Positions 4,143 through 41,187 of a stretch of DNA of 64,000 nucleotides are shown here, one piece after another. This DNA is from Phallusia mammillata (taxonomy: Eukaryota): assembly GCA_965637545.1 (NCBI GenBank), contig OZ281497.1, positions 21,452,001 to 21,516,000 on the forward strand, written 5' to 3'. The translations under genes and the position numbers were made by a program. Each line of letters starts with the position of its first letter. The first letter of the stretch is position 1. The notes beneath the pieces are model-generated. The model was not told the DNA's origin. It did not search any database and worked only from the letters and a program-made list of their open reading frames with translations.

Positions 4143-4207
4143 ATATGTTTCTATATTTTGTCATTGAAATATTTTCTCTAGTGATTTCTCCAGCATTTAA
4201 ATTATAC

Positions 4208-16848: not shown

Positions 16849-18285
16849 ATGATGGAATACAGAGAAGACAGTACAGAAACTTTGACAAGGTACAAAAGAC
16901 GATGGATTTTTCTGGTGTTTTTCACATTGCTTCAGTGTTTTCCTGGGATCTCGTTTTCCATGTTTGGCCAGATAAGCAGCTTCTTTGTTTCCTACTTTAA
17001 CGTAACCTATACACAGGTGGACTGGTTAACTGTGGCCATCAACGTGGCACCGATATTCTTGACATTGCCATTGTCTTGGACTATCTTTCGTAACATGTTA
17101 GGATTTCGAGGCATCGCTGTCATTTGTGCGTCTACCAGCGTAATAGCATTTGCTTGTTTTGCTATTTCCATGACCGACGGGTCTTTGTTTGCTCTGAGCG
17201 TGATCGGTCAAACAGTTGGTGGAATTTCTGGACAACTGGTGATGACGATCCCACCGACATTCGCTGCTTTGTGGTTCCCTGAAAATGAAGTTGGAACAGC
17301 TATTGGTGTCACTTCAATGGGCACGTACATTGGTAACTTTATAGGCTTGTTGGTTCCTACTTATTCGTTAGTCCATGGCAATGCAAATTCCACTTCTATG
17401 CGTTGGAAAGAACAGGACAAATATGCATTGATTTGGATCTATAGCACGTGTGTTTTTGTGGCAGCTGGTCTGGGCTTGTTTATTTGCATTTTTGTGACAA
17501 ATTTTCCACCGAAACCACCAACTATTGCACAGAAGAACAAACGATGCTCCGAAGAGTTTGCTAAAAACCGAACTTCAACTAAATTTTGGTTGCAAATAAG
17601 ATTTCTTTTGACCAACAGAACATTTCTTTGCGGGACGTTGGTTTTTGCCATTGTCTTTCAAACACCCATTGTGGAAACCACTATGATGTCACAAATAGTT
17701 CGAGAATTTTCTAACAGAAGCCATTTGACTTTGAAACCTTCTATTGTTGGTTCATTTACAATGTGTTTCAATTCATTGGGAAATGCTGTTGGTGCCGTAA
17801 TTGCAGGTAAACTAGTCGACAAACTGAAACATTACGATACCCTGAGCATAGTTGGCACTTTTCTGTGTTTCTTATCCACACTAATCATTTTATTGGGATC
17901 CGTTTTTGCTGTTTACCAGTTGCTTTACGTTGGGAATGCTTTGCTGGGAGTTTTCGCCCAGATCTCTTTGGTAACTATTTACGATATGACAACACAACAC
18001 ACTTATCCTGTTGATGAAACGTTTGTCAGCATATGGTTGATAGGCATCGCAGTTCCTTTTGGGCTTTTCTATGGCCCAATTGGTCGTTTAATATTTAAAT
18101 CCTTTGGTGGAACTGGAGTCCTTTTATTTCAAAGTGGAAGTTTTGCTGTTGGTGCTGCGTTGTGCTTTTTATTTTCACCTGAATATGGGCGATTGGATGT
18201 CGAAGAATCTTCGGAATCGGATCAAAATGAAAATACTCGGGTCTTAGAAAGACAAGCTCTAGTTCAACATGGTAACGTGGAATAA
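16849..18285 (+). CDS. SLC49-like MFS copy 6 (intact, intronless, ~478 aa from ATG 16849)
   Basis: ORF 16816-18285; YKRRW, VDW, WFPENEVGTAIG, PPKPPT, TYPVDE motifs. Confidence 0.92.
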   Translation: MMEYREDSTETLTRYKRRWIFLVFFTLLQCFPGISFSMFGQISSFFVSYFNVTYTQVDWLTVAINVAPIFLTLPLSWTIFRNMLGFRGIAVICASTSVIAFACFAISMTDGSLFALSVIGQTVGGISGQLVMTIPPTFAALWFPENEVGTAIGVTSMGTYIGNFIGLLVPTYSLVHGNANSTSMRWKEQDKYALIWIYSTCVFVAAGLGLFICIFVTNFPPKPPTIAQKNKRCSEEFAKNRTSTKFWLQIRFLLTNRTFLCGTLVFAIVFQTPIVETTMMSQIVREFSNRSHLTLKPSIVGSFTMCFNSLGNAVGAVIAGKLVDKLKHYDTLSIVGTFLCFLSTLIILLGSVFAVYQLLYVGNALLGVFAQISLVTIYDMTTQHTYPVDETFVSIWLIGIAVPFGLFYGPIGRLIFKSFGGTGVLLFQSGSFAVGAALCFLFSPEYGRLDVEESSESDQNENTRVLERQALVQHGNVE

Positions 18286-19256
18286 AGACCCTGTCCCATG
18301 CAACTCTTAAACGTCGTACGTTTAGGTTCGATGATGACGATGTTTGTGTGAACTTCTGCATTGAAGTAGTTCCAACCAAATTAAAATTACGCCAAGATTC
18401 AAATGACATTGCATTTCTGCGTTCACAGAGTTGGCTTTAAATATCGTGCACGTGTATTTAAATTTGTTGACACCGCGATTATAACAGCAATGTTATTTTT
18501 GCGTAAAATGCACTTTCAGCATTTGATCACGGAAGATTGTTTTCAACACCAGACATATTGACGTGTGTATTAATTGTTTGAACGTTGAAGGAGATTGCCT
18601 TTGCCATAGTTTCCGTTTATTGTTATATACATCTCCAAATTACGCAACATGTTCGCAACATCGTTTGCTAACGAAATAAAAGAAACATATCCTTCATAGC
18701 AAGCATGATTGATAAGGTATTGACAACGTGTGTCTTCTCTACCTTGGATTGAGTGCTTTCGTATCAACATGCAAATATTGTAGTAATTCAAATTTTAGAT
18801 GATGTTCTTGTTCTCACACATCACACACAAAAAATGTTTTTACATGTAGTGAAAACTTTTATTGTATTTATAAAATGCAAAGTTAAGGATGTTCCGAAGA
18901 AATAACTGTGATGTATTTCCCTAAAAGTGCATAAAGAGGGTAAACATATAAAACAATCGCAAAAAGACCTGAAACAAAGTATAACATTAAAAATATAAAC
19001 CCTGTCTAATGTTTGTTGTCGTTGCTTAAACAGAGTTTTTAGTTTACCTAAACAAGAGTTTGATTTTGGTTTAACCAGAAACAGTTAAGTAATCAAATTA
19101 GTTTGTGTGTAACTTTGTATTTCATTTTGTTTGAAAAATGGAGCTTACTCATACGATTCCAAAAATTCGTTATGTGTGTAGACTATAGACTCGTAACTTT
19201 ATGCTTTACGAACATAAAAAAACATGTGACTTAGCAACATCGATCACTGATAATAA

Positions 19257-20693
19257 TCATTTATTTTCGCGTGTGTCATTGATCAATTTTGCCGATTCTG
19301 CCACTTCGTCTACTTCACTGAGATTTGGATTCTCAAGAACGTCGAAGCGTCCGTATACGGGCGAAAAAAAGAAAGTCAGAATCAGAGCCATCAAAAAACT
19401 TACATTCTGAAATACCACAACCGCTATGCCGCCGAGCGAATTAAATATTACTCGGGAGATTTCGCCAAAAAATATTCCGAATGGTGCCAAGACCCCGATC
19501 AGCCAAACACTAACCACCGTCTCATCAATGGGATACGTCTGCTGGGTTGATATGTCGTACACAACCACCATGGTAATTTGCCCAAACAAGCCTAACAGAA
19601 AATTTCCGGCGTACAGCATGATGTACTGCGCAAAGACGACCCCTAGTGTTACAATTACAGCGGCTAGAAACGACGCCAGGCTGCTGGCTATCGACAGACG
19701 GTCGTACCGCTTGTACTTGTCGACCAATTTGCCTCCAATCAACGTCCCAACCACGTTTCCAACTGAGTAGAAACACATGACGTACACACCTATGACGTCA
19801 TGCTTCAGGGAGAGCCCCTTCGCCTCCGCGAACTGTTGAATAATTTGTGACATCATTGTGAATTCGCCGGTGGTGCCTTGGAAAATTAATCCAAATACCA
19901 AAGTGCCCAAAATGAAAGTGCGGTTTGTGAAGATTGTTTTTGTCTGGGACCAGAACGCAGGACAGTTGAGATCTGAAGGAGTCTGATTTCTTTTAAGTTT
20001 TTGGGCCACAGTAGGGGGTTTAGGTGGTAGATCTGTTCCGAAAATTGCAAGGACAACGCCAACAGATGTTGCTATTGCGATGCAAACGCAGTAGATCCAA
20101 ATCAAAGTGTATTTATTTTTTACCATCCAGTATCGCTTGTCCGCAGAAGTCAAGTTGTTCATTCTTAGCTTCATAAGGTGCGATGGCACAATAAGACCTA
20201 CAAGGTTACCGATGTACAAACCCATCGAAATAATCCCAATTGCTGTTCCTACTTCGTTTTCAGGGAACCACAAGGTTGCGTACACTGGTGGAATTGCAGT
20301 AATAATTTGTGCTGCAAAGCCGTTGATTGTTTGTCCGATGACGCCGATTCCAAAAAGTGACGAACCGGCCAAAGAAATCGCAATACAAGAAAACCCCACT
20401 GCTACTGATATTGCGCAAATAATGGCAAGAACTTTCAACCCCATAACTTGTTTAAACAGCAGCCAAGCTAAAGGTAAAGTGGTAAATATGGGTGCAATGT
20501 TAAAAGCTATTGTCATCCAGTCCACTTGGGCGTAGCCGACACTGAAGTAAGCGACAAAAAAGTTGCTGATCTGGCCAAAAGCAGAATACGATATCCCACA
20601 TAGTATTTGTAACAGCGTCAGAATGCCCAAGAACAGCCATCGTCTTTTGTATAACTGTGTGTCCGTTTCTTTGTTGGTGATATTGTTCAACAT
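19257..20693 (-). CDS. SLC49-like MFS copy 7 (478 aa, intact, intronless)
   Basis: Full ORF with the same motifs. Confidence 0.92.
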   Translation of the reverse strand: MLNNITNKETDTQLYKRRWLFLGILTLLQILCGISYSAFGQISNFFVAYFSVGYAQVDWMTIAFNIAPIFTTLPLAWLLFKQVMGLKVLAIICAISVAVGFSCIAISLAGSSLFGIGVIGQTINGFAAQIITAIPPVYATLWFPENEVGTAIGIISMGLYIGNLVGLIVPSHLMKLRMNNLTSADKRYWMVKNKYTLIWIYCVCIAIATSVGVVLAIFGTDLPPKPPTVAQKLKRNQTPSDLNCPAFWSQTKTIFTNRTFILGTLVFGLIFQGTTGEFTMMSQIIQQFAEAKGLSLKHDVIGVYVMCFYSVGNVVGTLIGGKLVDKYKRYDRLSIASSLASFLAAVIVTLGVVFAQYIMLYAGNFLLGLFGQITMVVVYDISTQQTYPIDETVVSVWLIGVLAPFGIFFGEISRVIFNSLGGIAVVVFQNVSFLMALILTFFFSPVYGRFDVLENPNLSEVDEVAESAKLINDTRENK

Positions 20694-22138
20694 GTTGCCT
20701 TGTTATATTCGTCCTAATTTTTTGCCCAAATGCTGCATAACAATGTACTTAAAATAAGGCTAAAAAGAATAAGTTTTTGTTACTGCTTAGTTTAGGTGTG
20801 TTGTGCTTGTGAACAAAAATTCTCTCTCAGGTACCTTTGGCTAAACAATTTCTAACTTGCGTAGTGTTTTGCATTAGATGAGACATAACTTCCCGCCAAC
20901 CGTAGTCCAGCTGTTATGATCTCAACTACATGCTGGATCGGACCTTGCCAAACATGGCGCACTAGTTAATTGTATACAAGTTTTTACCCAAGGAACGCCA
21001 ATCCGCCACTAAGGAGTTGCTGCTCTTTTTCATTGTTTGTGCGGCCATATGTATCGTGGCTCTGCTGAAGTTTTGCGAACAAAGATTTACCCTTTAATCC
21101 GTTTGATTGTTTGCAGCTGCAGTCGTATTATAATCGTTTTGCTCTTCCGTTTCTAAACAAACGGTTTTCACACAATGGTGGCGGGTTACGTAATGCCAAA
21201 CTTATATATAAGTTATGTTGCTAAAGTTCCACGCAGTTTGCTGACGTTTTCATTACTAATTTCAAACGCCGTTTACTGAACTCAAATACTTGTTTATCTT
21301 TGGTAGCATGCAATTAATACATTTGCTCCGTACATACAGCAGCAGGACCCCTAAACCACATGCACACCCGTGTACACGGATATTGTCCATTTATTTATTA
21401 CAAGTTACAACGGATGTATGTGAAGGGTGCAAATGATCGATAACATTTTATGCTGTGGAAACAATGATCGATTCGTTGTCTAATAGTAATACAGGTCAAC
21501 AACTGGTTCGACTATACCTGCGGTGTACAAACCAGAGGAGAAAGTTCAATTCCTTAATTACCAATGCAATAATACTCCAAAGTTAGGATCTTATTCTAAT
21601 CATCGATTTGTGTGTGTGTGGTTCCTTCTGGCGCTTGAAAATACACAAAAGGGTTTCCTTCGGTGGTTTATTTTCATGTTGAATCCCACCCTCTTTCCCC
21701 AGCACGGTGGTAAGTTCTATTAGCCTCCAAACTGGTCCAACCAACTTCCCACCCTCAGTTGTGTTACTCACAATGCGCCAATCCCACTGTGAGCCCCAGT
21801 CACATAATGCTTTATAATACGGTGTAGCTGCACCGCGTTCGGCCATTATCCACCAATTGTGCCCTCCACTGTTGGTATAGAGCTACTTACACCATACCTC
21901 ACGTCAGCCGCACATGGAGCTACTTTTCGATAGGTGGCGCAGGAGCTGAGTTATATATATATTCCTAATATGAAAGTTAAAGACACATTTAAAACTTAAA
22001 TCCTGACCACAACAGTATCAGATAATCTGCGATAATTAGAGAACTTTGTTTAACTCCATCGAAATTTTTCGTAAAAACAAACAATTACGTTGACAAAAAT
22101 ATTGGGTTTTTCAGCGCAGCAAGTATTTACTCGGTGCT

Positions 22139-23655
22139 ACGGTGCATCTTCTGTAGTACGCAGGTAACGGCTACTTTGAAACCCGTACGGACTTGGTGTT
22201 TCAAGGGTGAAGCGCAGATGCTCACCATCTGCACAAAAATCAGCAAACAATCTCATTATCGTTACTCCTTTGCGCTAATGTTTTGCTGTTTTATCAATAA
22301 CCAACAAGTAGGCTGAGGTGTTTGAAAAAATGCAAAGGTTAAACAAAAATATCTGTTGCTACCGCTTAACATTGAGAGCAGGGTAAATCTATTGTCAAAA
22401 ATGAGTTATTGTGTGAAAAAAACTAACCTTGTGCATTAATGTACATTTAGGGAGAATCATTAAGGGAAACGTATGTAGACCATTAAATACTATAGGAGCA
22501 CTGCAGAAACTGTGTACAATAAAAGCAAAGCTTATGTTTCAGTTACCGGCGAGGTCATCTTCTAAGAATTCGTCTGGAAGAATATCACTTCTCGGAACCT
22601 CATCGATGTCGATAGGAAAATTGGAACGCTGCGTCATAATGTCATAGAAGAATCTGGATGAAATTAAAACTAGATTGATTGCGAGTGGTCTGATGACAGA
22701 CATTCGATCGGAATGCAATCGCGAGTTTTGTTTTCAAATTACCGACATATATAAATTTCCACTGGTAGCAGTTAAGATGAACATAAATTCATAATTGGGA
22801 TCAGCCCTGAAGCGTCTATGCAGACCAGCGATCACGGCACACTCATATATACTTTGATTTCCACTGGTAGCTTACAATGTTAAACCAACACACATAGGTC
22901 TCATCATCTGCTTGTTGTTTAGCGGAACTCATTTAATTTCAATTTAAAAGTACATAAGGTTTGCACAAAATGGTGCAAACTGATTGAATTCATCCAACAA
23001 TTTCTTACACCTGTCGGTTCCTTCTCCTCCGCCTTCGAACAAAGATGTAAGTCAGCGCAAGAATTAGGGCAAGTAATAACGCTGCGGACACTGCAGCAAG
23101 GGCTGTCACCAATGTGGTGTTGCTTGCATGAGCTGCAGTCGAAGTTTTTGAAGAACCTGTAATTTGAAAATGTCGGACTTTGCTGCATTTGCTGCAGGAA
23201 TAAATGTGTGTGTCTAACCTACTTACTTGGTATAACATTTGTTGTCGGTGTATTTCCGGTTGAGTATAAAGAAAACATAACTGATGTCGGCTCAGTCTCG
23301 TCCTCATGCTCGAGTGAGGAGGCCTTTGTTGCATTAAGTAACATGTCGAAATGTGCCTCATCAGACCGACCTCACATAAAAAAGCGTGATGCTGTTTTTT
23401 TTCATTACTCAATACCCTTGTTTGTTGAAAAAGACTGATTCAAAACAGCATATCATGAAACCCTTGAAAATCCTTGAGGAACATAACATAGAAACAACTC
23501 AAACCAAACTTGCTTAACAAGTTTAAATTACAAACAGGCAAACATTATTTTTACATTTGCCATCCTTTTCTTAAACCTCATCTCTGACATAGAGACACAC
23601 CTGATTTTCATTAAACCAGCTTCAACCGACAATCAGGTCCATAAAGAAGTCTGAC
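22139..23655 (-). CDS. Degenerate or partial third lectin-mucin-TM gene (5' exons not resolved; possibly a pseudogene)
   Basis: Exon-like pieces: ...HAFLCE (CTLD-end-like, ~23370-23434), an S/T-rich exon (~23228-23323), TM plus stop-transfer LVTALAAVSAALLLALILALTYIFVRRRRRRNRQ (~23011-23156), and putative cytoplasmic exons near 22743-22870, 22547-22653 and 22139-22228. Boundaries uncertain. Confidence 0.45.
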
Positions 23656-24213: not shown

Positions 24214-25961
24214 CTGCATCTATAGGGTACACTCTTTCATCGGACATTTTGTTTGTTACAAACGATTTCGATGATTGACTTTTGTCCCAAATACAACCAT
24301 AAAACTAAATAGTTAAAGGTTGATGTATAGCCTAAAATGATTTTTAATGAGTGCTTTTAAGGTGGAGACTAACTATCCTATTGCTCAAACAAATGTTGAC
24401 GCAGCACTTTTCATAAGAAGCAATTAGTAAATCGGTGAAACTATGATAGTAATGACTGAAAACGTCATTATTGACGTAAGTATATTAAGAGTTGCTATTT
24501 CTCCATTAACTTGACAAGTACTATTATTTTCACTTTAATTTTTTGGTTCAAAAGATTTCTAATTTTTTTTATTCAAGCTGACTTCACAAGCATGGCGTTA
24601 TTTGTTTTCTCGTGATATCGCATTTGCAATTAGGTACAGTAAACTTAAATCTGCAACCCAGTAGTCGTTGTAATCCAAGCATTGTAGCTCATTTGCTTGT
24701 AAGTGTCAACGTTTTATTAAACAAAAATCTTCACAAAAAATTTCCGCTTGCTAACTTCATAGAGCGGTTTCAGCTTGATCTTAAAACCTTGTTGAGGATT
24801 ACCCTGTATCATTTTTTTATTTCTTGCAACGCATTTTAAATCAGCAACACATTTTTATCGTTTGATTCACAATTGTTAAAAATACTGCATTTTATCGATT
24901 TGGATTGGCCGGTACAGTCGTTAATATCTTGGTATAAAACTTGGTGCAGTTGATCGAACAACAGGAACACTGTCGTACTCATGCTCATCCGATTGATCTG
25001 CAACAATTAAAAGCATGTAAATAGTTCTGTATAGGTTATTCCAAAAAATCTGTTGGTTATGCAAACAATAGCAATTCGAAAGAGATGCCGGTAAGAAAAG
25101 AATTGAGGATCTCTGTTTCAGAAAAACTGTGGCAAATTTATTCCTGGTTGTTTTTTCAAGTTTTTTTTTAGCTTTTCATCATATCGTTTAATATGACTCT
25201 ATTCATCTTAAAATATCTGTGGTGTGACTTGTAGACTAAATTTCCTGTGGTCAAGCGACAACCAAAAGTATTGGCAAAGCTCACTCAACGTCCAGAAAGT
25301 TTGAATTCGCTGAGCGTGATGTTTGTTTTATGTAGCAGGGTGTTTGATGTGTAGGATTTTGAACTACTACTTTTTCATATAATTTCGATGTATATGTGCA
25401 TTATTGACTGCAGTTGCGAGTATAGCCATTGTTGTGTTTATAGGGCTACATGGTCGACACCGATGTACCCGCTTGCCCCAAACACTTGTCCAATTTTCAG
25501 ACTTTTGTTTTGACCACTTGAAATTATGACAACCGAAATGACTTAACCATATCTGATCTGGTACCTTTTTCGATGTAGTATGCATCAGTGTCACGACCTG
25601 AGGACGAAAGAGAAGAAGGAACGTATGACGTCAAAGGTATATTGTCATTTCTTGATCCCTGGTTACTGACGTGGCCTCGCCAATTACTGAAGCCTGGCGT
25701 ACCTAATTGAAGTTACTTAGTTAGAATCAAAAGCAAAACAAAACTTGATGTGATTTTAATGACTCGCCTGCCACGTTTATAGAATCGCTGGGTAACGATT
25801 TTAATAATTATAGAAACGATTTGTTATCACTACTTTATTGTTTATTATTACCCAACTTGTTTTTGATGACCCAAGCGTAAAGTAGGGTACACTGGTTCTT
25901 ACACAAATGACCTCTGCTTTGAGGCACATAGCAAAGCCATCTTTAGATGGTTAATATCAGT

Positions 25962-28900
25962 TCATCGGTGGTATTTAGGTTTAAAAATATATGTTTTGGT
26001 TTGGTTTATTTTGTTCGTGCGGTTAAAATAAACACCTGATCTCCCTTTATTGATGAAACTTCCTTTGAACGATTGCGTTGCCGACGTCTGAAACCTGTTC
26101 GTATAGGTGATAATTTGTCGCTCAGTTCCTGTGAAACAACATGGGCACTGGTTACCCATAGACCAACTGTTTAGTTTATTTCGTTTCTGAACGTTGCACT
26201 CATTTTCTTGAAAAACTTACTGTTTGTAAATAATAGTGGAACTGACACCAAATATTTTCTACTTACTTGGTGGGCTGATCGTGTTGTTCACCGCCGGTGT
26301 ATTTTGACCCCTGGTTGGTTGAACCAGGTGGTTTCCTCTGTTCGGGAAAACAGCTGATTTTGTTTCCAGATTATCCTGAAAATGTGGACTTCTGATCCCA
26401 TTAGTCCACGATTTTTCCGCTGTAAAATGAGATTATGTGGTTTAAAACATATTGATCTAAAACTGACAAAATAAATATAGGCGTAATATATAAGATATAG
26501 TGGGCATGGTTACCGAAGTTTCGCAGCCATTTATAAATAGCAATTGTTACTTTGTGTTTGTAGACAAAGCAAAACATAACTTACTTTAATTTGTAAACAG
26601 ATAATAATTTTTGTTTGAAAATCGCCACTTTAAAATGAGTTTGGGTGATTTGGAAAGAGGACTAACCAGTTATGGGGGGAAAGTCCTCCTGATCGGCGTC
26701 TGAATCGTCAAACGAGTCATCAATCTCAGTTTCTTGTTCACTAGGTAAGGGTGGGAGAGGTTTTTGTCTCTTTTCCCGTTCTGTTAGCCCAAAACAATTA
26801 TTTACAGGCAAACAATATGACAAGGACACGTTATACGCAAAAATAGTGCCCGTTGACTTTTTCTTGCTGTTTTACGAAACCATTCAACGATAACAATTTA
26901 ACAAAGTGCAATGCAAATAAATTTAACTTGACTTGTTAAGTTGTCACATTAGGATGTATTTAAACGTCGATTTGGTAAAAACGTAAAACTTACCCGCTAA
27001 CTCCTTCCTGTTTGCTTTTATTTTTTTCGCCGCCATTTCTTGTGCTAGTTGTTTCTGGTCGTCCAACGTTTTCGTTGTAACTTGACTGGAAGCTTTACTC
27101 GGCGCAGTAGTGCGACTGACTTTTGATTCTTGAACAGATTTTGGAGTAGCCTGTGTCTTCGGTTTTCTACGGTTCGGTTTTGTTTCGTTTTCCTCCCAAT
27201 ATTCTCTTTCCGTTGTCGTGTTTGAGGCTTTTGTTGGTTTCTGTCTCAGTGTTTGGCTGTTTACCTGCTTGGAGGTTTTACTAGAGCGGGGAGCTTTATT
27301 CTGCACTGATTTTTGGCCTGGTGATTTTGTTGAGGTTTTTGGTTCAGATTGCTTTAAAATTTTGGGTTGATTTTTCCCTTTTGAGGCATTTTTCTTTACC
27401 AGATGCTTCTTGCCCTTTTCTGTGGAGTTCTTTAAAGTTTTTGCTGTTTTTTTCTTAACTTCAATCTCGTTTTCGTAGTCTTCGTCTTCTTCATCAACAT
27501 ATTCATCATTTTCATCATAGTTGTCTCCCAACTCTTCTTCATCAATCCCATCATCTTCCTCTTCCTCAAACTCAGTATAGTCCTCATCGTCAATGTCTTC
27601 ATCATCGTTTTCTTCTTCAGTTTCCATATAATCCTCTTCTTGATCATAAAATTCCTCTTCCACATCTTCATCATCCCAGAATGTTTCCTCGTTCACCCTT
27701 TTTGACTTCTTCGGTCGCCGTTTTTGCTTTTGCACCACTTTTTGTCTCTTACTGCTGGTCAAAGTTTTTGTCTTTTTGCGTGACAAAGATTTTGTGGCCC
27801 TTTGCCTTTTTGCAGTTACCCGACCTTTAACCGCACCTCTTTTTCTTTCCAGTTCTCTACTTGCATGTGCACGTTTCTTACGTACGGCAGTTTGTGACTT
27901 GTTGACAAAATCTATTGCAAAAAATAGGTCGCTGTTTAGCTACGGCAGTTAGAAATTTATGCAGTATTTATAAAACATTGCTAACCTTTCTTTTTTGCCT
28001 TTGCTTTTTCGATCGACTCTTTCGAACTGCAAGTTTTTTATAAATATTAACAAAAGTTTTTGTTTGCAGGAACTGAGGTAAAAAATTGGTAAATTAGAAA
28101 AAAATGCAACCTTTTGTAATAAACTGATCCAAACTGCGACATGTTTCACATATTGTGGCCTGTTTTTACTAATATTGTCAAAACTGTAGTCGAGTAAATC
28201 GAGTCACTTGTAACGATTAAATGGATCGAAATGTTTATGACTAGGACTATGTACAAGTTAATTACAACTTAATTATACTATACAAGGCGATAAAAATCAC
28301 CAACTCACGCGTTGCCAGCTAGTCCTTTAAATTTCTTCACTAAACCTATCCCGGCAACACCAACAAGTCCCCCAATCAACCCTGCCCCTCCAGCCGTGCC
28401 AAGTGAAGTAAGAAGCCCAGATGGGTCATCAAGGCCACCAGCGACACCGGGCTCCGATTCTGATCCGTTTTCGGTTGCTTCAAATACAATGTACAATTGC
28501 AATGGATGATTTTTACAGGCTAATTTAATCTATATGTTAAAATATAGACCTATCAATACAAGAAAGAAACTATGTGCCCTCTAACAAATTTTGGACTCAA
28601 TCTTTGCTTAATTTGTGGATGATATCGGACAAACAAGCAGTCTTTTAGAACAAAACTGTTCGGTTGATATTATGATTATGTACTGAAGTAAAATCAGTCA
28701 GATATGTCAGTATGTTGTGATCCTTCCTTATGCCAACAAAGAACGCAGGGGCCTATAAACACAAACCAGTTATCTGTCTGTACGTTAAAATGTTCTTACG
28801 CCATATCTTTGCTAAGTGCGCATAATTTATTCACAAAAATGCATGTGCTTTCGTTTTCATCCGACTCCTGTCTACCTGCAGTCGGATCAAAATTGCGGGG

Positions 28901-31629
28901 CAACTTATTAGGCTTTCCACCTTCTGGGGCGCTGGTTGTCAACAGAGCAGTTGTGTCTTGAACCTCAGTTGTATTCACCGCAAAAGTTGTGTTCATTTCT
29001 GCAATTGACGAATTTGTTGCTGTTTCTGTGCTGGTCTCATCAAACGTTATCAATGTCGTGACAGGGACGGTTTGGGTGGTCGTGGTGGCGGCTGAACTAC
29101 CACTGGTCGTAATTGTGTCGGTGGTTACTGAAATTTGAGGGAACGTAACTATGGTTAAGTCACCTTTAATTGAATAGCAATTAGTTTAAGTGACTGAAAA
29201 ATCCCACAAGAGTGAAATATACACGTCTTTTTTACAACAGTCTGTTTTGACTGATCATAGTTGTAGATTCTAACGCAAAATTGTGAAACACTGCTGATTT
29301 ATCAATAAAGTTAGTGTCAAGGGTTGATTATAATTTTTGTTTTGGTAGCTACCATTTTTAGTCTAAAGGGCATTAATACGGAACAGAAAATGCAAATTAG
29401 GTTATTTGACCAATTAAGGGGGGTTGAATGTCTTTGATTTAAAGCGCTTTTCCATTACATTTTGAAAGAAGCTGCAGCTTGCATGGGGTAGATACAAGGG
29501 CGTCCGCAGGTTTTCGGTTAGGGGGGTCAAGGTGGGTTGACCATTACACCATCCAGACATTTTATCATTTTTATCAGTGTTTGTGATTTGGGGGTCCGCA
29601 AAGAGATCTAATGACGTCATTAGGGAAATTCCCAAAATAAAATGTTGGACCCCCCCCCCTTTAAAAATTTCTGGATACGCCCCTGGTTGTGATTATGTCA
29701 ACAGCAAATTTGAAAATTAGCGATTTTTGAAATAGCTTAGTTTCAATCTGCCAAGGACTGGTAGAAGTGTGGCAAGCTGTAAATGCAGTTTACCAGTAGC
29801 CTATATGTGGTGATTTGAGATTTGCAGTGAGCCTAAAAAGATTTGAGCATTCTGCACTAATCCCCAAAATCAATTAATTTGATATCTACGAACCACAAAT
29901 CACCATATAGCTGCATTTGTCAAAAAACTAAAGAAATTGAACAGCAAGCGTATAATCATTTTTCATCCAACAATTTTCCAGGGGGGGTCAGCTGACCCCA
30001 TTTGCCCCTATGTGCGGACGCCCTTGGGTAGATATTATTTCCGCAAAGAAATTAGGCTCTAACAACAGTAATTGTCAAAAAGTTACTGATCTTTCAGGTT
30101 TTTTTTACCTGATGTGCTTATGTCTGTTGTTGTTTCTTTCAGGGTTGTAGTTGACTCCGTCGTTGTCGGTATTTCTTCTGTAGTTGTCACCGGGACTGTA
30201 GTTGTCGGAATTTGGGTTGTTTCTATTGTGGTTGTTGCTGGTGTTGTGGTTGTTGTAGTAGTTGTAGGTTTTGTTGTTGGTTCTTCTGTGGTTGTTGTAG
30301 TTGTAGGTTTTGTTGTTGTTGGTGTTGTTGTCGGTGTTGTTGTAGTAGGTGTTGTTGTAGTAGGTGTTGTTGTTGTTGTAGTTGTTGTGGATGTTGTTGT
30401 TAGTTCTGCCGTTGTTGTCGGTGCAAGTGTAGTTGTTGTTTCTGTTAAATTGGCACAACAACATAATAATAATACATATCTGCTACAATGCGTTTTTTCC
30501 CTCTTACAAATTTTACTCAAGCGACTTTTTAAGCTTCAGGAACAATCCAGTATTTCACGTCAGCTTATTCTGTCAGAAAAGCAGTCCCGTGACTGCACCT
30601 TTGATGATCAACTATCACGTGTTTTTATCACGTGTTGTGTACACCGAACGTTATGCAGTCGATTTTAACAATTTCCAAAGCCTGCTTACCTGGTAGAGAC
30701 CTTTGACAGATGTACCTCGACTGGAACTCATTACAGCCAATATCAATCCACCTGTAGAGAGGGTCAACTGCATGTACCCATCCCATTATCACACAATCCT
30801 CGTGATCGAGATCATTGGGCTCTCCTGACGCCCACTGGGCATCTGCATCGACCAGTGGTGTTGAGTCAGACCAAATCCACTCGTTTGTCTCGTAGAATTT
30901 CTTCAAGCCAATGTAATACGATGTGGGATATTCTGAAATACCAAAGTAAAATGTTACATTTTATGGTATAGGCCATTATGAACAGTCAAAAACAGTTAAA
31001 TGACAATAGTTTGTTTTGTCCCAGTCTTGAATTTATGTTCATCTTAAACAATCTGGCGATCCCCTACTGCGAAGCTGACATGTCCAGCTCCAGCATACAT
31101 CAACTTTTGGCGCATTCTCCACTGAGCTGGATTTTTTTAGCCTGCCTTTTGCCATATGGTGGTGAATGTTTGGTGACCGGCTGATATAGCGCCTTTAATG
31201 TCCCTGGCTTATTTTTGATTAGTTTTTTTTTTTCTAAAAAGTTGTAATTTGTTCCTAATTCCTATGTCGACCCATAAATGCCCTGCGCCTATTGCCGATA
31301 AAACTCCTTAGACAGAAATTATTTTGCCAAATCCTGATTAGTGCCCAAATTTGTAAGAGCGATATCAAGCACGCCATTTTGTTTCCAATATATTCTTTGA
31401 TTAATTTCTTACCGGATGCAGTTCCGATTTTCTCAATAAGAAAGTCCTGAATGGTTTTACTCTTTATTGTAACCAGGATGGCATCACTAGCATTACATCT
31501 TTCCTCTGCTTGATAATAGGTGTCAACTGTTCCACCGATAAAGTACTCAAACTCGCCTAAAACATGCCACTGAGAAAGGCAATTGCCAACAAGTGTACTC
31601 AAAATAACGATTACCGCAAGTCTGTTCAT
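25962..31629 (-). CDS. Type I membrane protein: signal peptide, EPN-type C-type lectin domain, Thr-rich mucin stalk, Gly-rich TM, long charged cytoplasmic tail (~868 aa)
   Basis: Phase-consistent exons 31629-31413, 30932-30690, 30441-30109, 29127-28876, 28477-28309, 28026-27986, 27911-26994, 26780-26667, 26419-26267, 26128-25962 (2607 nt). CTLD motifs YYIGL, WIWSD, WASGEPND, DCV, WIDIGC, YICQ. The last exon is the least certain. Confidence 0.8.
29495..30026. mobile_element. Intronic hAT-type MITE containing the end of a second element
   Basis: TIRs CAAGGGCGTCCGCA ... TGCGGACGCCCTTG; perfect TSD ggtagata at 29487-29494 and 30027-30034; internal terminus ...ctggatacgcccctg near 29685. Confidence 0.88.
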
Positions 31630-33580
31630 TTTATTACAAGATTATTATATCTGCGCGATAAAAATATTTTTTGTTTATAACCAATTTCTTTTTCAAAGCC
31701 AAATTCCTGTTAATAAGGCAAAATTGTTTTTTTCTACAACTTATTTCGCTTTCTCTAACAAGGACAAACCTAATTAGTTTTGTAAGGTATTTTTTAAGTC
31801 TATCAAAGACGTTTTTTAATTACCTTGCGGCCTAAACTTAACACTCTTAGTTACAAGTACCCTGTTGCAATATTGGAAATCGCTAAAAGCTTATATGTTC
31901 TATCACTATCACTGCAATTCCTAAAATCACTTTCACGGAAAATCAGTGTCGATTTTTGACCCTTGCGTCATACTTGACCCTTGTGTCATAATTAAAATAT
32001 CAAACATTTTTAGTTTATTTTTTTTCGATAGGCTGGTGCTGACATTTACCAAATGAACAAAAACGACACGGGTCAAGATATATGTGCAAAATTGCTAATG
32101 GGTATTCACTAAAGTTGCGCAATTTTGCTGTATTCGTCCGTAATACCCTTAATTGTGTCTGCAACTTAACGACCATTTCTCAGTCTATCTACGTGAATCT
32201 GCAAATTGACACCACTTCCGCCGTGCATTTGACTGCGGTTGTATCGCGAATGAAATATGCTTGATGACTTTTAGCTATTATCTTAGTTTAAAAAGTGAAT
32301 GAGTTTTAAAAGCAGTATATTTAACTCAATATATCAAGAATAATGCCTGGCAATCCATTCGCTTAAAACGTATAGCGTTTAAAACTGAACTGTTTATTTG
32401 TTAGTTTAATGGAATCCTTTGCAAAGGCAAATGAACTGCTGCAGTATACCACATTTAAAAACGTGTCATATAATTTCAAATTTATCCTTTTCATCCGAAA
32501 ATATTGTAAATTTACATAGAAAAGGACAAAAGAAAAGACGACCCATAGAAGCAAAAAATGCACAAAGATTTTAGTTTTGGTAAACTACCCATGGAAGCAA
32601 AAATACATTAGTTTTGGGAAACTAAAAAAAAAAAATTGTTGTTGGTTGTATCTTGGAATAGAAATTTGTATTATTTGACACATCCACAAACACTACAAAA
32701 CGCAATATAGCATTTCAGTCTTACAGTAGGAAAACCACACACTTTTTCATTTATCAGCAAATAGCCATCGGCAAAAGAATATCATGACTGTTAAGTGTAT
32801 TGTGTTGCAATTTTGACGTCACTTCCAGGCGGTAGCATATTTACTTGCAGTCGTTATGTCTATTTAAAGCTTTAGACCCAGCGTTCTGCGCACATTGTAA
32901 CTCCGCGATAATCGCTTTTATCAGTACGAAGAAAAACATAAAAAATGTGACATGGTTGCTATTCGTCCAATTTAACTTTTCTGATTGATTTCTGCCTAAT
33001 AGCCTATATCTTTTTGTTTGGAACTTGATGTGGCAGATTCGTCGGTTAGAATAGAAACGCCTTTTTCGGGAATTATCTGTCGATAAATGAAAATATAACT
33101 AAAAATTCAAGTAAACTCAGCAGCTTTCAAAAAAACATTTGATTTTCACACACTACAAGTTGCTATACGCCGTGTTGACTGAAGAAATGCCATTGTCGCT
33201 AAATTCATCTTAAAAGCATTTAAAAGTCGCAACATCTTAAAGTTAGAGCAACAGTACTGGGGGTTTGTTGGTTACCCTTACAGGGCCGAAAAACATCTGT
33301 GACAAGCATGAATTAAAATTTAAATGGTCCTCTCCGCCCACTGGCTGATCTCAAAGTAACCAGCCTATTCAATGCAGCTAAACCCACTCATTGTGACGTG
33401 AGAAGCGCTGTGTGGAAGTATTCAAAAATAAAATGTAGTCACAATGCCTGGAAAACCACTTGCTTTGCCGTACATGGGTACAGATGGTTATTAGTTTGAG
33501 GCAAGCAAGGCAAAGGCAAAGTAGTATCAACAAACTGACTTTACTGTGTGAACGATGCGCAACTGTCGAGCTAAGTGGTA

Positions 33581-36502
33581 ATGGCGCCATTCTTATTGTT
33601 TTTCCTTGTTGCTATCACCTTGAGCCAACCTGGCGCAGCAGAGTGGATAAATTTCGCCAACCACGAGTACAAAGTTGACTTTAGAACCGTCAGCAATTTT
33701 TCCGCAGCGCTGGGATTATGTGAAGAGATGTTGGCAACCCTTGTAGTTGTTGAATCTGAAAATGTTCTCGATTTCCTTTTGGGGGAAATAGGAAATCTGA
33801 CTGGTAACGTTGTTAAAACATTGTACAGATACGGTTTTAAATGGCAGCCTTACTGTTTTAGATGCACCCCACACGTTCTACGTTGCCAGGACGAATTTAA
33901 CGGATAACGACAGCAACGAAGGTTCAAACACTACCTGTTTGGGTGTGATCAAAATGAATGGCACAGAAGAAATGATTTATCAAATCAGCAATATATCTTG
34001 TTTTACGCCAGCAGGGTAGAAATATATTCACCAAATCTTGACGTTGGTATTTTGTACTAAACGTACTTTTAAGCAGGTTGATTTGTGAGCGGAATACAAG
34101 CTTACAAACAACACAGTTTACCGAAACAACAACTACGTTTGCTACGTCTGTGAAGACTACAACTTTTATCGATAGTGATACGACCACTCCGGAGAAAGCA
34201 ATTGGTACAAAGTCAACCTTTTGTGAATACTTAAATAGACAAATTCAAACTAGAAGCATTTTGCTCGTGTTTAGGGACGGCAAGTGCTTCTACGCAAACA
34301 GGGTCAAGCAAATTCAGCACAGAGTCAAGTACATCCGATGCACCGACAACAACTAGTAATGGTAAATGGCTGTTTACTTATTTACCGTCAGCAGTTGAAA
34401 ATTAAAGCAAGTGAAACCAGTCATTGATAGTATAAGTGTGAAAAACGTTGTTATCAAATCTCACCAAGTTTTATACTTTTTACATTGTCTTGGTAATATA
34501 TTGTTAATAAAAAACTGTTTACATTTGTAGAGACAGTGTCTGGAGTGCCACCAAGCGGAGGTTTAACACATACACAGGTGACAATCATTTCAGCAGTTGG
34601 TGCGTGTGTTGGAACGCTTCTGGTGACGATGGGTTGTTTCCTCCTGTGGCGCATCACTCGCGGAAGGTGGGCGTAAACAAAAAGTTGTTTACAACATTTT
34701 ATATTGACGTAACTTAGGTAATGTTTTGCTAATCCCGGTAGTGACTCGCTTTTTCCGACTGCATGATACAAAATATGTAACTACTGATCTTATTTTTGGT
34801 TTGTTTCCAAGTCTATTAGACCCTACAATAGTAACAAAAAATAACTAACAATTAATTATTGTTTTTTGTTTTGAAGAAAAATTTTAAAAGTAAGAAAAAG
34901 ACAAATGCAAGCTTTGTCTCTTAAATACCGTCTACAAAACAAACCTGATTACAACGCAAGTTACCAAGAAGGTAACCTTACAAACAAACTTGCAGGTTCT
35001 GCAAAACTTTAAACTAAAATATATATTTTTTATTAGAAACTGACGAAAGTCCGCCCGTTTCCAAAGCACCCAAAACTGAGGATGAGCAAGCATGTAACAA
35101 TCACAGAATACCAACCAAAGTTTCATACAAAACGACCCAGTTTGGCTCCGAAGGTCAAAAGTCTCCTAAATCTGCAAACAGCACTGACTTTCCCACTTAC
35201 GGACAACACGAAGATCAAGTCTTCTCAACTTCATCTGCTTTAAGACTAAAGAGAAGGGCAAGTTTTCCGCCCGATTTCCATGGCAACAATGACGTACGTG
35301 TCAGCTACAAATCGAATGGAAAATCAAAAAGCGATAGAGCATCGTTGAGCAGTATATTCCTGAAACGGAACGACACAAGGTCAGAAAGTGTTGATTTGCG
35401 TCAAAGCACCATAAAAGATTTGTTTAAAATTCAAACTATCGTTTCTGAATTCGTAAACGGATCAACAAACGTAGGATCTACAAAGATACAAACTGCGACC
35501 AAGTCAAATATCCAGAAACCAGAAGAAACTGAAATAGCTACAAGAATTCCAAATGATGGAAATCACACAAACAATGAAAAATCTTGCAGCAACCAAAAGG
35601 AAGAAGGACCTTCCAAAGAACTACAGGATCGTACGAAAATTGATAATAGTCAATCAGGCGAAATTTTTATTTCATCACCCCAACCTGGTCATGTAAAAAT
35701 GCGCCATGGAGAAAAAGACCTTGCCAGCAAAGGACGGGCCTTTCAAGACTCGATTGCGAAAGGCGTTCGACGACTGAGCCAACCCTTTCGCAAAGGCAAA
35801 ATGTTTGAGGTAGTATTTGCACAAGACGCTGACGACGATATATACCTCACAATGACTGGAAACTCTAAGACCAAAACTCAAGAACAACCAATGAGCGACG
35901 ATATCTACACTGCAATGTCTGGCGAAAGTAAAAACAAAACCCCAGCAAATTGGAAACCGCCGAAAAATCAGATAAAGAAACCAAACGTGGTTTCGAAAAA
36001 AGCACCGACTATCCGTCCACCTCAAGCAGAATTTCGAAAACCTTCAGATCCATACGTGGCTTCGAGAATGCCCTGGCAAGACCAAGATGACAGTCAAGAC
36101 TATGTGGACATGTTTTCGAAATCTCAAGTCCATGTTGGTGCAATAGGACAAGATAGCGTTTATACTGATATGCACGGCTCACAACACATGCCAAGCCGAC
36201 CGGCTATTCATGGTAACAGCAGCAGTCTCGGTCGTAGCCAGACTCAAAGACCGAGACAACAGCGGTCAGCCATGGAACGAAAATTGAACGCTTCTGTTTC
36301 CGGACAACAGAAGTTTCACACAATGAATACGAGGCGCGACGATGATTATGAGGACGTTTCAACACTGCCTCGCGTAACATCACACCACAGCGATTATTTA
36401 AAACCAGCACCAGAGCGCCATACTGACCCCAAGCGATATAATCGAAATTCGAGTGTTTCCCCATACGGAAGTGGGGTTGCACCGCATGTGCGAAATTGGT
36501 AA
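33581..36502 (+). CDS. Type I membrane protein: signal peptide, shortened C-type lectin-like domain, S/T-rich stalk, TM, ~525-aa tail with multiple YxxM motifs (~762 aa)
   Basis: Phase-consistent exons 33581-33803, 33862-34015, 34077-34204, 34275-34361, 34531-34666, 34877-34971, 35037-36502 (2289 nt). Exon 1 is paralogous to exon 1 of the opposite gene; the domain ends GLICER; TM IISAVGACVGTLLVTMGCFLLW. Confidence 0.82.
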
Positions 36503-37785
36503 AGACAGTAGCAGTCAGAGACTAAGCTTAGTAGTCTCTGGTAGCAGTACAAATGCAACCCAATAGGTTGTGCCCTAAAAGTGCAAACGTAAAATTTGTT
36601 TTTTGATTTTTTATTATTATCCGCTAGATGACGCTAGTGTACCGTATGGCATTTTGTCTGCAATCCGTTTGATGTGCGACAAGCAATCAGACGAATTTTT
36701 GACATAGACCTAATCAGTATACGTACTTGATTGCATAGTGATATTAGGTGATATTGTATGAAGAAGATTTTGACTATGGTTTAACTTAACCGCGTAAGAA
36801 TGAACAATGTAAACTTTGGTTTGAAGGCAAACTGTTATTTCATTGTTTTTGAAAAACGGTAATATTGCCTATGCAAAGTTTAACAAAAACATTTATTTCA
36901 CGTGGTAGAAACCAGCCTTTTCCATTTCCTTGCCCGGAAGATGAAATTAACTTGAATACAATTTTGACATTAAATTTCAGGATTTTGCACAACGATAGGC
37001 TACTCGTTAATAAAAGACCAGAAAACCTTCTATGACTAGCTTGGTTTGGTAGTTTTGAAAGATAGGTCGGCAATTTAAAATCATTACGTAACCTTGCTAT
37101 TGTCAATCTGCGCAATGAGTTGAATTCAAAGTACGTATCCTAGCGCCATTGGATTAGATACCAAGCAAAGGCTTTGCACCTATACAATTTGGTCAATCAA
37201 TATAATTTAAGACATAAAATACAACTAAATTACTATTCTTGGGTACAACATACCGGTAAGAAAGGAACCGCGTCATCAAATTCGAACTGGGACGCATTCG
37301 ACACTGCATTTTTTGTGACGTCATAATGCAAGGGCGACAAAGCGTGACGTACGTTTCTTCGTGATTTGACGATTGCTTTACTTGTTGTTTGTTTTGTTTG
37401 CGCTAGTTATCTTGTGTGATAGAGTGATAAATTCTTCCTAGCTTGGATAGTTTGTGTAAGAAAGACAAATGCAGCTTAGGCTATCAAATTATTCGCAATA
37501 GTTTTGTGCTAAAAATGAAAAAAAGTATTTTGTGGAACATTAGATTTAGTTATTAGCTTCAACAACAACGTCAGTACTCTAAAACTAGAAAGGGAAAGTA
37601 AACACAATTAAAAAGAATTAGAAAAAGAAAATAAATACTAACAAGCATTTTGTACATGTTTTTCACTTTGGTTATTCACTATGCAGCATTTGATGAAGGT
37701 TTATTTAGCATTTGAACAAAATTGCTGTGTTTAACAACTTAAAAAGGTTAAACTTAAAGTGAAACCAATGTAAACATTTTACTGA

Positions 37786-39875
37786 ATGGGAAAGATAATT
37801 AATATGAGCGCTGATTTTGCCCATCAAGAAACACTGACTTTGCACAAGTTGGTGTTTAACAATGACATTTCAGGAGTATCAAAGTATGTAAACCGCAGCA
37901 AGTCAGCCCAGCTTGCTGATCAGCTGGATCAACATGGAAACACACCGTTGCATCTTGCTGTCATGCTTGGCCACAAAGAATGTGTTCAGATTCTTCTCAA
38001 ACACAATCACACTGTTAATGTCAAAAACATATATGGTTGGACTCCGTTGCATGAATCAATTAGCTATGGTGACAGACAAACCATAACATCACTGTTTAGA
38101 GCCATAAGAAAGCAAAACAAAACTGCCATTAAGCATAAAAAGCCTGAGATTCGCAGAGCTTTGGAAGCAATCGGTGGCAATTTTTCTTTGGAAATGAAGT
38201 GGGATTTCCAAAGCTGGATCCCTTTTGTGTCAAAGATTTTGCCATCAGACATATGTAAGATCTACAGAAAAGGAAGTCGCATTCGACTTGACTCAACCCT
38301 GGAAGATTTTAGTGACATGAGATGGATTCGTGGGGATGTGACATTTTTGGTAAACTTTGACACTGAAGGGGAACCTGACATTGTACTGATGGATAATAGG
38401 TAACCTTATTAAATGTTTTAATCCACTACAATTTCATAAACTGTAATGCCAAGTATATATATACTGGCTGAAATGTGTTTGATTATCCTCATGCTAAAGA
38501 AAGTACCACTTTGCATTTGTTTTTCTTTGCATGATTACTAGCACATTATGTTGTGTGGTATGCATTAGGTTAAGTAAATATAACATTTGCATTTTAAAGG
38601 TTATCACACAGTAGCTCATGTAAATATGTTTAGAGTTAATTGTTTGGTCATGGGTGCACAATGAGTAACAGTGGTGTATGTTATGATAGTTATTTGATTG
38701 GCCACTTGTCTTGAAAAGAAATCAAATTGCCCTAAATAAGAACAAAGTGACCATTGAAAGAGCATAAAATGTAGTGAAGTGTTAATTGAAATGTACTGAA
38801 AATTATGATTTATGCATTTTTTGGTCATTCATAAAACAATTGAAATGTTAAAGTTGTATAATTTCTGCATTTTATGACAGTTCAATGGCAATATCGTTCT
38901 TAGTTGTTCATTGTCTTGATTGTGATTCTGAAAACTTTTTGGAGTAAATTCAAATGTTACAAAGACAAAATATATCTGGGGCCTGGTTTATTAGGGTAAT
39001 GTTATGTATTAAGTAATATTTTCTAATGAGAAATGTGATGTCATATATTTTCCAGGAGAAAAGTTTACCAACGCATGCAGCAATCTTCGAATGAACGTGA
39101 AGCCTCAATTGAAGATGAAGTGGATGTTGCAATGAGTAGCGATATCATTGATGTGGCTGTGAAAAGCAAAGCATCTGTCATCGAAAGAGTTAGTTCAGGC
39201 TGGTTTTTCAGGCATGAGAAAACTGAAAAAATTGGAAGATTTGAAGCAGACTTCTATCGAATATCTGGCCTTTTGGTACAGACTAGGAAACGCAGAGAGC
39301 ATTTGTCCGAGGAAGACATTCGGCGCAATAAGTCTCTGCGCGACGCCTTTAAGCATGCTGAAAACACTGAAAAGTTCTTGGAAGAAAGTGTTGATGAAGA
39401 ACCAGAGAGAAGAAAGTCATTACCCGCACCTGAAGGTCAGAAGATGTCATGGGACCAATATCACAAAAGCCTTGCTGCCTCAAACCCATGTTTGGGAAGG
39501 TACCCCAGAGAGAAAATAAATCAAAAACAGTTTGACCCTGTAGTTGGACTTAGTGCTGACTTTCCAGTTAGGTTGGAGGATTTGCTGCCTATTTTGGAAG
39601 CTTTAGGCCCAAAAGGAAAAATGTTCTCAAAGCTAAAAGACTTTATCAAGCTAAGACTACCTCCTGGCTTTCCAGTACGAGTTGACCTACCAATTTTCCC
39701 TGCTGTAAAGGCCACTGTCAGTTTTACCCAGTTCCAGTTTTCTGATGCACTTTCAGACTCTATGTTTGATGTCCCAAGGTCGTACAAGGAAGACCGCGAG
39801 TGGTTTGAAAAAACTGCCAAAGAAAAGCAACAAGAAATGGCAAAACTCAATAGCAAATCTGGAAGCTCAGTCTAA
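37786..39875 (+). CDS. ANKRD13C: Ankyrin repeat domain-containing protein 13C
   Basis: Exons 37786-38399 and 39056-39875 (phase-2 intron, join DNRRKVYQR). GNTPLHLAVMLG, ISYGDRQ, WDFQSWIP, RKRREHLSEEDI, LPPGFPV; no UIMs at the C-terminus. Confidence 0.9.
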
Positions 39876-40431
39876 ACTTTCAAGTATTGGCAAAAGTCTA
39901 CTAATTATCATAACACCAACTATACAGTAGTTGATTAGATTTTCCTCTTTAGTTTCTTCTTCTGCATTATTTTTCTGCCTGTTTTTAGTTTGTTTTACGT
40001 TTTAAGTGCAATTACTTTCCCTTTTACTGCACTTTTTATGTATGGGATATATATACTGTATGCATGCAGTTTGCAATGAGATTGAAGTTGGTTGCAGTGT
40101 TATCTGCAATCGGTGATACAATTGTAGTACATATGAAGGGTATCTCGCAAACCTATGCTTGTTCATTGTTATTTGTTTCTCGGCAGAATTATTCGTTTGT
40201 TTTTTCTCGCATTATCCTGGTGACTATCCATGATACACACTTTTAGACATTACTTATGCACCATGATTTTATCTTCACATAATTATAGACCAACGTACAC
40301 GATAAAAGTCACGTGACAATCAAATCATGGTGCAGTTGAGAGTTTTATTGCATCTGCATATTTTTATGAAGTATGATTTTAATTGTTACTTTCTTTTGAT
40401 GCTTAGGTTGAAGTAGCCATAATTTATTGCG

Positions 40432-41187
40432 ATGAATATTTTGCCGAAAAAAAGCTGGCATGTGCGCAACAAAGACAACGTCGCCAAAGTGCGCAAGGAC
40501 GAAGAAGAGGCACGTCTTCAAGAAAAAGATCGACTCCGAAGAGTGGCTTTAGCGGAGCAGGAATCTCGCACTGAATTGCTTCGAAAGCGCGCACGGGGAC
40601 TTTCAAACACCACAGACACGCAGTTGGCACGTAGCGAACCGGGCACAACGACCAATCTGTTCAAAAACTTAGAGACCGATGCAAAAAATGCCGAACACGA
40701 AGAGGAAAAGAGATTGGAAAAGGAGGCACAGGAGAAAAAGATTGGTTTGTTGACCTACCTTGGACAGAGCGCGGTTGAGACAATGAAAGATGACGACAAG
40801 CCTTGGTATTTCAAAGCCCCTCAGCGAACAGCCGACGAATCAAAAGACTCGAAACGAAAAGCGTCGCTTGATCCTCTTAACGATATGAAAGAGCATTTAT
40901 CTAAGAAGAAAAAGAAGTCGAAAAAGTCACATAAAAAGGAAAAGACGCATTCCCACGAGCGGCGAACCTCTAGCGGTGCTGGCAAAGACGACAAGATGAT
41001 GCAAATGCGCAAGGCCCGGCTGCAGAGAGAAGCTCAGGAGAGACAACGCGCTAAGGGACTGCTGGAAAAGCATTACGGCGTTGCTAAAGCAAACGATGAC
41101 TCACCGCCCCGACAATCAACGTTTGTCCCGAAATACAACAATCAGTTTAACCCTCTTTTCGCTAGGAATAATAGAACGTCAAAATAA
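40432..41187 (+). CDS. LENG1: Leukocyte receptor cluster member 1 homolog (CIR-N domain)
   Basis: MNILPKKSWHVRNKDNV, KIGLLTYLGQS, PWY, LDPL, YNNQFNP motifs; intronless CDS. Confidence 0.92.
   Translation: MNILPKKSWHVRNKDNVAKVRKDEEEARLQEKDRLRRVALAEQESRTELLRKRARGLSNTTDTQLARSEPGTTTNLFKNLETDAKNAEHEEEKRLEKEAQEKKIGLLTYLGQSAVETMKDDDKPWYFKAPQRTADESKDSKRKASLDPLNDMKEHLSKKKKKSKKSHKKEKTHSHERRTSSGAGKDDKMMQMRKARLQREAQERQRAKGLLEKHYGVAKANDDSPPRQSTFVPKYNNQFNPLFARNNRTSK

Follow-up and report, generated by a model that had tools for sequence, protein, structure and literature searches.

CD19 and the long cytokine-receptor chains join immunoglobulin (Ig) or other ectodomains to long non-catalytic tails that dock SH2 proteins. 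CD6 has a non-catalytic tail of 244 residues, which binds GADS and SLP-76 directly (PMC5440646), while the tail of layilin comprises residues 244-374 (131 residues) and binds talin (PMC2132847). Among ascidians, a haemocyte membrane glycoprotein of Halocynthia roretzi carries two motifs of the immunoreceptor tyrosine-based activation type (ITAMs) and acts in aggregation and phagocytosis via PI3K (reviewed in PMC5465252), and the FF/FcoR allorecognition receptors of Botryllus schlosseri are head-to-head, co-expressed pairs with tyrosine motifs on the FcoR tail (PMC12582321). The present work describes two divergently transcribed genes, A and B, of the ascidian Phallusia mammillata, which lie in a stretch of 64,000 nucleotides of contig OZ281497.1 (positions 21,452,001 to 21,516,000; hereafter the window, in which all positions are given). 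Judged by their sequence, both genes are real and intact, belong to a family of ascidian receptors that has gone unstudied, and encode unusually long tails. The preferred reading, with a probability of roughly 0.55, is that A and B are receptors that each carry their own docking platform and would dock SH2 proteins directly, B via PI3K. Layout, family membership and motifs were read from the DNA; phosphorylation, partners, ligands and cell type we infer.

The genes begin at the ATGs 31629 (minus strand) and 33581 (plus strand), with a spacing of 1,951 bp as first reported, and the shared upstream interval (31630..33580) is a candidate divergent promoter. The twelve exons of gene A run from 31629 to 24920 and encode 880 residues; the seven of gene B run from 33581 to 36502 and encode 762. 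All introns are GT-AG and no internal stop is present, and the domain order given in the original prediction, which is signal peptide, C-type lectin-like domain (CTLD), Ser/Thr stalk, membrane segment and long tail, could be built in both genes. The likeness of the first exons was also borne out (31% identity between A and B over 52 residues, E 2e-6, both ending in phase 1). The gene models were joined for local counts, and homology searches were run exon by exon.

Gene A is read on the minus strand. Exon 1 (31413..31629) encodes the signal peptide and the first half of the CTLD, matches the family exon-a profile (E 4e-11) and, weakly, Pfam Lectin_C (E 0.06). Exon 2 (30690..30932, 243 nt) encodes the second half of the CTLD and is placed by Pfam, family alignment and PDB matches. 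The modelled stalk has 195 residues, 54% of them Ser or Thr, and is divided between the Thr-rich mucin part of exon 3 (30109..30441) and the Ser/Thr part of exon 4 (28876..29127). Exon 5 (28309..28477) encodes a Gly-rich predicted membrane segment followed by KKFK and ends in phase 2, and the juxtamembrane exon 6 (27986..28026, 41 nt) leads from phase 2 to phase 1 and corresponds to a 47-nt exon of Styela clava LOC120344945. The large tail exon 7 (26994..27911) has a basic block (30 Lys or Arg in 77 residues), an acidic block (27460..27675) and a second basic block. The acidic block has 72 residues with 48 Asp or Glu and six Tyr, one of them in YEN, which are candidate Syk-type substrate sites. 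Besides an acidic stretch, exon 8 (26667..26780) encodes KPLPPLP (26743-26763), an SH3 ligand of class I; exons 9 (26267..26419) and 10 (26036..26128) are predicted tail exons. The gene had first been ended at 25962, the stop that is reached by reading through the donor at 26035 behind exon 10. Two further phase-1 exons are in frame: the predicted exon 11 (25565..25597, 33 nt, GT-AG), which encodes YYIE, and the predicted exon 12 (24920..24997), which encodes an acidic YDSV and the stop and is followed by AATAAA-type signals. Gene A thus probably ends at 24920 rather than 25962, and the longer end is preferred because relatives in another ascidian also have small phase-1 exons with tyrosine motifs after the membrane exon.

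Gene B is read on the plus strand. Exon 1 (33581..33803) encodes the signal peptide and the first half of the CTLD and ends in phase 1, and exon 2 (33862..34015), which ends in phase 2, encodes the second half without the long (Ca2+/sugar) loop. The last CTLD strand (LICER) and the start of the Ser/Thr stalk are in exon 3 (34077..34204) and the stalk, which has 85 residues and 46% Ser and Thr, continues in exon 4 (34275..34361). Exon 5 (34531..34666) encodes the membrane segment (hydropathy 2.06) and ends in phase 2, exon 6 (34877..34971) is a basic juxtamembrane exon that leads from phase 2 to phase 1, and exon 7 (35037..36502) is a tail exon of 488 codons and the stop.

Exon 2 of gene A clearly encodes one half of a CTLD (E 1e-7 with Pfam Lectin_C, above the cut-off) with the core Cys residues kept, and its nearest solved structures in the PDB are CLEC4C, mincle and E-selectin. 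At Ca2+ site 2, the EPN motif, the downstream Glu and the Asp are kept, and WID is found instead of WND. Ca2+-dependent sugar binding by A is possible but uncertain, because the EPN and the acidic ligands are kept while Ile replaces the Asn of WND. The CTLD of B has no Pfam Lectin_C match, and its exon 2 was matched neither by Pfam nor by hhalign nor by the PDB. Exon 1 of B matches a family profile built solely from other species (E 1.6e-6), and exon 2 aligns to the family exon at both ends around the deletion, with both cysteines present; when long gaps were made cheap, none of 1,000 shuffles scored as well (p=0.001). An extra phase-2 intron lies before the last CTLD strand of B. By these alignments, B appears to be a family member that lost the long Ca2+/sugar loop.

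Among the best single-domain matches of A exon 2 is a distinct CTLD subfamily, in which the members with names belong to Styela clava and Clavelina lepadiformis, and A exon 2 scores E 2e-26 on a family profile built without it. A and B both have the CTLD subfamily signature and a domain split by a phase-1 intron. Family relatives were found in S. clava, C. lepadiformis and the ascidian assembly ERZ25067582. The Styela gene LOC120344945 (XP_039270223, uncharacterized), known from annotation alone, encodes a protein of 782 residues with signal peptide, CTLD, stalk, membrane segment and a tail of 461 residues, which contains four YxxM, a count far above chance, 11 YxxPhi and two PLPxIP. Its locus reproduces the RefSeq protein exactly. 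The second CTLD exon has 243 nt as in A and is 43% identical to A exon 2, and the intron pattern is common to LOC120344945, A and B: a membrane exon ending in phase 2, a short exon ending in phase 1 (47 nt in the Styela gene, 41 nt in A) and a large tail exon. The Styela gene differs from A and B in its unrelated tail sequence, an additional Ser/Thr segment before the CTLD, an intact long loop and a head-to-tail arrangement. Uniqueness of the architecture was rejected, because LOC120344945 shares the design, the intron phases and a long YxxM tail.

The neighbours of LOC120344945 in Styela are LOC120344507, which has ITIM-like repeats (ITIM, immunoreceptor tyrosine-based inhibition motif), and LOC144422995. 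Family tails besides those of A, B and LOC120344945 include one of 283 residues with four ITIM-like motifs and tails of 107 residues with 6-7 Tyr, and that of the Clavelina member has about 30 residues and is free of Tyr. The family retains its ectodomain and swaps tails, because its members carry differing tyrosine sets and tail lengths (about 30 to 525 residues); A and B belong to this wider family, and the stand-alone receptor system that was first proposed is not supported. The original claim that ectodomain and tyrosine-rich tail are fused in one chain is most likely right, and its strongest support is the annotated Styela RefSeq protein, which has the same layout and intron phases. A recent duplication was rejected as the origin of the pair, since A and B are each nearer to genes of another species than to each other. 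A and B appear to be intact and anciently diverged and to belong to a hitherto unstudied family of CTLD-mucin receptors of type I in ascidians; the searched literature, which leaves out most subscription journals, contained no paper on it.

Some further observations concern the Styela and Clavelina loci. A Styela neighbour gene (L009:1-7700) encodes two CTLDs, thrombospondin-like repeats and a mucin stalk, and four ITIM-like motifs lie in its tail; it adjoins the YxxM-rich gene, which makes the two a candidate inhibitory/activating cluster. Just downstream of LOC120344945 (L009:16078-17175, minus strand), an open reading frame joins an acidic tyrosine-rich segment to kelch-like repeats. In Clavelina, a second family gene (L010:22232-22852; 1,371 residues, several lectin domains) starts 9 kb from the short-tailed member.

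Tail A has 485 residues and 12 Tyr (473 residues in the first model) and tail B has 525 residues and 15 Tyr. Order-promoting residues make up 17% of tail A and 22% of tail B, and no similarity between the tails was found when they were compared exon by exon; their description as unrelated, disordered tails of about 470-525 residues stands, with A now somewhat longer. Tail B has four YxxM motifs (YLTM, YTAM, YVDM and YTDM; 35843..36172), each preceded by acidic residues, within 110 residues, where 0.34-0.38 are expected (p=1e-4 in global and local shuffles). Its count of YxxPhi motifs with acidic residues is six (p about 0.001), and it has YEDV after DDD (36347..36358), which fits the Nck-type SH2 consensus, and, 16 residues downstream, YLKP, which also follows acidic residues. 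The richness in acidic-context tyrosines that was noted at first therefore holds for B and is weak for A (p=0.02 against local shuffles and 0.19 for the first model). A pattern search found no ITAM, hemITAM or ITIM in tail B, and identity as ITAM/ITIM receptors was rejected, as no such motif is present in either tail. Given the YxxM excess in B and the marginal tyrosine context in A, the motifs lend good support to a docking platform in B and make one no more than plausible in A. The tail exon of B has no homologue among 5.8 billion proteins (limited to 0.55-1.75 times the query length), and its Atlas look-alikes were only sub-threshold.

In the preferred reading, ligand binding would cluster the receptor atop its glycosylated stalk, Src- or Syk-family kinases would phosphorylate the acidic-context tyrosines, and SH2 proteins would then bind the tail directly. 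The SH2 binding preferences are those established in vertebrates. B has no sugar loop and its ligand is probably a protein; it would recruit the p85 subunit of PI3K via the four YxxM and a Nck-type adaptor via YEDV, and its signalling would drive PIP3 production and actin remodelling, for example in engulfment, adhesion or aggregation. A keeps the EPN loop and may bind glycans in a Ca2+-dependent way; its KPLPPLP would hold the SH3 domain of a Src-family protein, and it would present its acidic multi-tyrosine tract and YDSV. Blood cells or barrier epithelia would be the likeliest site, and the head-to-head layout may give shared regulation, with no need for obligatory pairing. Tyrosine kinases and PI3K are used in ascidian haemocyte aggregation and phagocytosis (PMC5465252).

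Several points weigh against this reading. The predicted membrane segment of A is marginal: it has 29 uncharged residues and 8 Gly in the best stretch of 19, whose hydropathy is 1.85, against about 2.1 in B and 2.8-3.0 in the relatives. The Ile of A at the Asn position of the canonical WND makes its sugar binding doubtful. Tail A has no YxxPhi excess and no YxxM, and the pattern search found no ITAM, hemITAM or ITIM in it. Tail sequences are not conserved between species, and because of this divergence the conservation of motifs cannot be judged by alignment. The immune setting of A and B is suggested only by analogy. Finally, two runs guessed to be RNA, in which 30600-36599 was examined, gave no spliced read or transcript contig that would support splicing or expression of A or B, and their sole signal was a repeat in intron 1 of gene A; this fits restricted expression and proves nothing.

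An alternative, which we regard as unlikely, is that A and B form a co-regulated heterodimer, in which A would be the glycan sensor with its EPN loop and B the loop-less signalling co-receptor, both driven by a bidirectional promoter like Botryllus FF/FcoR, whose genes are head-to-head and co-expressed (PMC12582321). It would agree with the head-to-head layout at 1,951 bp, with the complementary anatomy of the two chains (loop kept in A and deleted in B, SH3/acidic tail in A and YxxM tail in B) and with the Gly-rich membrane segment of A, which is suited to helix packing. In assembly ERZ25067582, too, two family genes lie head-to-head with about 7 kb between them (L012:476-2328, minus strand, and L012:9105-12228, plus strand), with full loops and tails that are apparently made of small tyrosine-motif exons, and A and B each best match a different one of them (50 vs 35 bits and 39 vs 31 bits). 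However, these two genes are closer relatives of one another (69 bits) than of A or B, exon 1 trees are weak, and the tests reject no grouping (p-AU 0.17-0.37) and so neither pairing. The loop deletion of B is not shared with that pair, because both of its genes have the full loop, and the Styela family genes are arranged head-to-tail. A head-to-head pair conserved in ascidians is, from these comparisons, possible. Against the heterodimer, moreover, one FF/FcoR partner has no tyrosine motifs, whereas A and B are both long-tailed; stalks of 195 and 85 residues would put their lectin domains at unequal heights; and neighbouring genes often lie close together in this compact genome.

The interval between A and B contains two exact copies of a 10-mer that resembles an NFAT/RUNX composite (32729-32738 and 33450-33459), which is found nowhere else in the window, where 0.19 are expected; the 10-mer was chosen post hoc. 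The most far-reaching form of the pair proposal is decidedly doubtful: A and B would be a conserved, co-transcribed ascidian lectin sensor/co-receptor pair with adaptor functions like those of IRS and LAT built into the two chains, whose tails would be about double the length of the longest non-catalytic tail described for a mammalian immune receptor, and one chain would have given up its sugar loop in exchange for a surface that binds a partner or a protein.

A further, rather improbable, alternative is that A and B are adhesion or surface-organising mucins in the style of layilin, CD43 or podocalyxin. The tail of A would then act by its charge blocks on anionic lipids or ERM-type linkers, its tyrosines would be incidental, and the setting may be epithelial, tunic-forming or reproductive. 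Tail A indeed consists mainly of basic-acidic-basic blocks without YxxPhi enrichment, and its acidic-context signal almost disappears in local shuffles. Basic juxtamembrane clusters are known to bind ERM proteins (PMC2132847), and the Styela protein has layilin clusters among its nearest look-alikes in the Atlas (0.88, as a lead only). Against this, the YxxM counts in B and in the Styela protein are far above chance, Tyr accounts for six of the eight one-transversion derivatives of Asp in the acidic block of A (p=0.004, post hoc), and each of the last exons of A adds a tyrosine motif; direct docking by self-contained receptors remains the preferred reading.

That the long tails are a modelling artefact or reflect gene decay, with tail exons on separate transcripts or unspliced and the receptors short-tailed, is highly improbable: the missing spliced reads and transcript contigs and the resemblance of tail A to a low-complexity nuclear protein would agree with it, but the 12 exons of A and 7 of B are in frame and stop-free, the tail exons are open over 918 nt (A) and 1,466 nt (B) behind membrane-to-large-tail introns of just 65-282 nt, the annotated Styela gene has the same phase pattern, and DNA contigs are base-for-base identical over gene B. 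The two sequencing runs that contain gene A are DNA, and their short-read contigs have zero differences to the window at 31149-36599 and 30600-31083. Gene B is therefore not an assembly error, as the contigs of both runs are identical over 31149-36599. In the same interval the 10.7-kb contigs of both runs, which drop variants, contain no heterozygous site, a lack that one would not expect at an immune-type locus of an ascidian.

The window has no N bases, and the genome is compact. A and B are flanked by an array of SLC49-type transporter genes on one side and by ANKRD13-LENG1 on the other. The array (2876-20693) consists of tandem intronless MFS transporter genes of the SLC49/FLVCR type on both strands, and the copies near 3718 and 12174 are broken by a frameshift or stop. 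On the other side, ANKRD13 is followed by an intronless LENG1 (37786-41187), and the same adjacency is present in another ascidian (locus L002). The intronless gene at 40432 was identified as LENG1; among its named relatives the best comes from Ciona intestinalis (56%), and those closest to it overall are either ascidian or unnamed. No receptor exons were found within 10 kb of LENG1 at eight loci from four ascidian sources, at one of which ANKRD13 lies beside LENG1, and no contig is on record for the LENG1 of the window itself. Downstream of A lies a third single-pass receptor-like gene, C (21480-23370, minus strand). Its six exons are in frame and have canonical splice sites; they encode a stalk, a strong membrane segment that ends in phase 2, and a tail of some 100 residues in which YDIM and YRKV occur and which closes with YYY. 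Upstream of it, neither a signal peptide nor a CTLD exon was found, translation across stops as X revealed no CTLD remnant either, and its 5' part may have decayed. Intron 1 of gene A contains a high-copy short repeat (31049-31185) with very high contig depth, and a piece related to it, which looks like a tyrosine motif exon, lies in an intron of gene C (22772-22800).

Few surface signalling receptors are known from tunicates, the sister group of vertebrates. In at least two distant ascidians, one lectin-type ectodomain is joined to tails of about 30 to more than 500 residues with PI3K-type, inhibitory-type or acidic tyrosine sets, and B and the Styela protein are candidate receptors upstream of the tyrosine-kinase and PI3K dependence of ascidian phagocytosis and haemocyte aggregation.

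Layilin and chondrolectin have a signal peptide, one CTLD, a stalk and one membrane segment as A and B do, but the tails of A and B are not short as in that group, and the best single-domain relatives are ascidian. The homology searches returned neither of them as a named relative, and the ascidian signature CVxMGW differs. The tails of A and B are, as first stated, far longer than those of vertebrate type I CTLD receptors (485 and 525 residues against 131 in layilin; PMC2132847). CD6 is alike in having a recognition ectodomain and a long non-catalytic tail that docks SH2 adaptors; it differs in its SRCR ectodomain, in a tail half as long and in the lack of homology. The Halocynthia glycoprotein, which we take to be A74, has two ITAMs, whereas A and B have none, and the likeness to it is drawn from a review. 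The view that docking platforms of this kind normally lie only on separate adaptors finds no support in that form, in view of CD6 (PMC5440646) and the Halocynthia ITAM glycoprotein (PMC5465252). FF/FcoR share the head-to-head linkage with A and B, whose co-expression is only a candidate feature, but have Ig-like ectodomains and ITIM, hemITAM and core motifs on one partner only, while A and B have long tails on both. B has the cytoplasmic YxxM motifs of PI3K-recruiting co-receptors and adaptors in the style of CD28, CD19 and IRS, and A has none. A receptor with its own docking tail is thus an established principle, and the combination found here, together with the length of the tails, is what is new.

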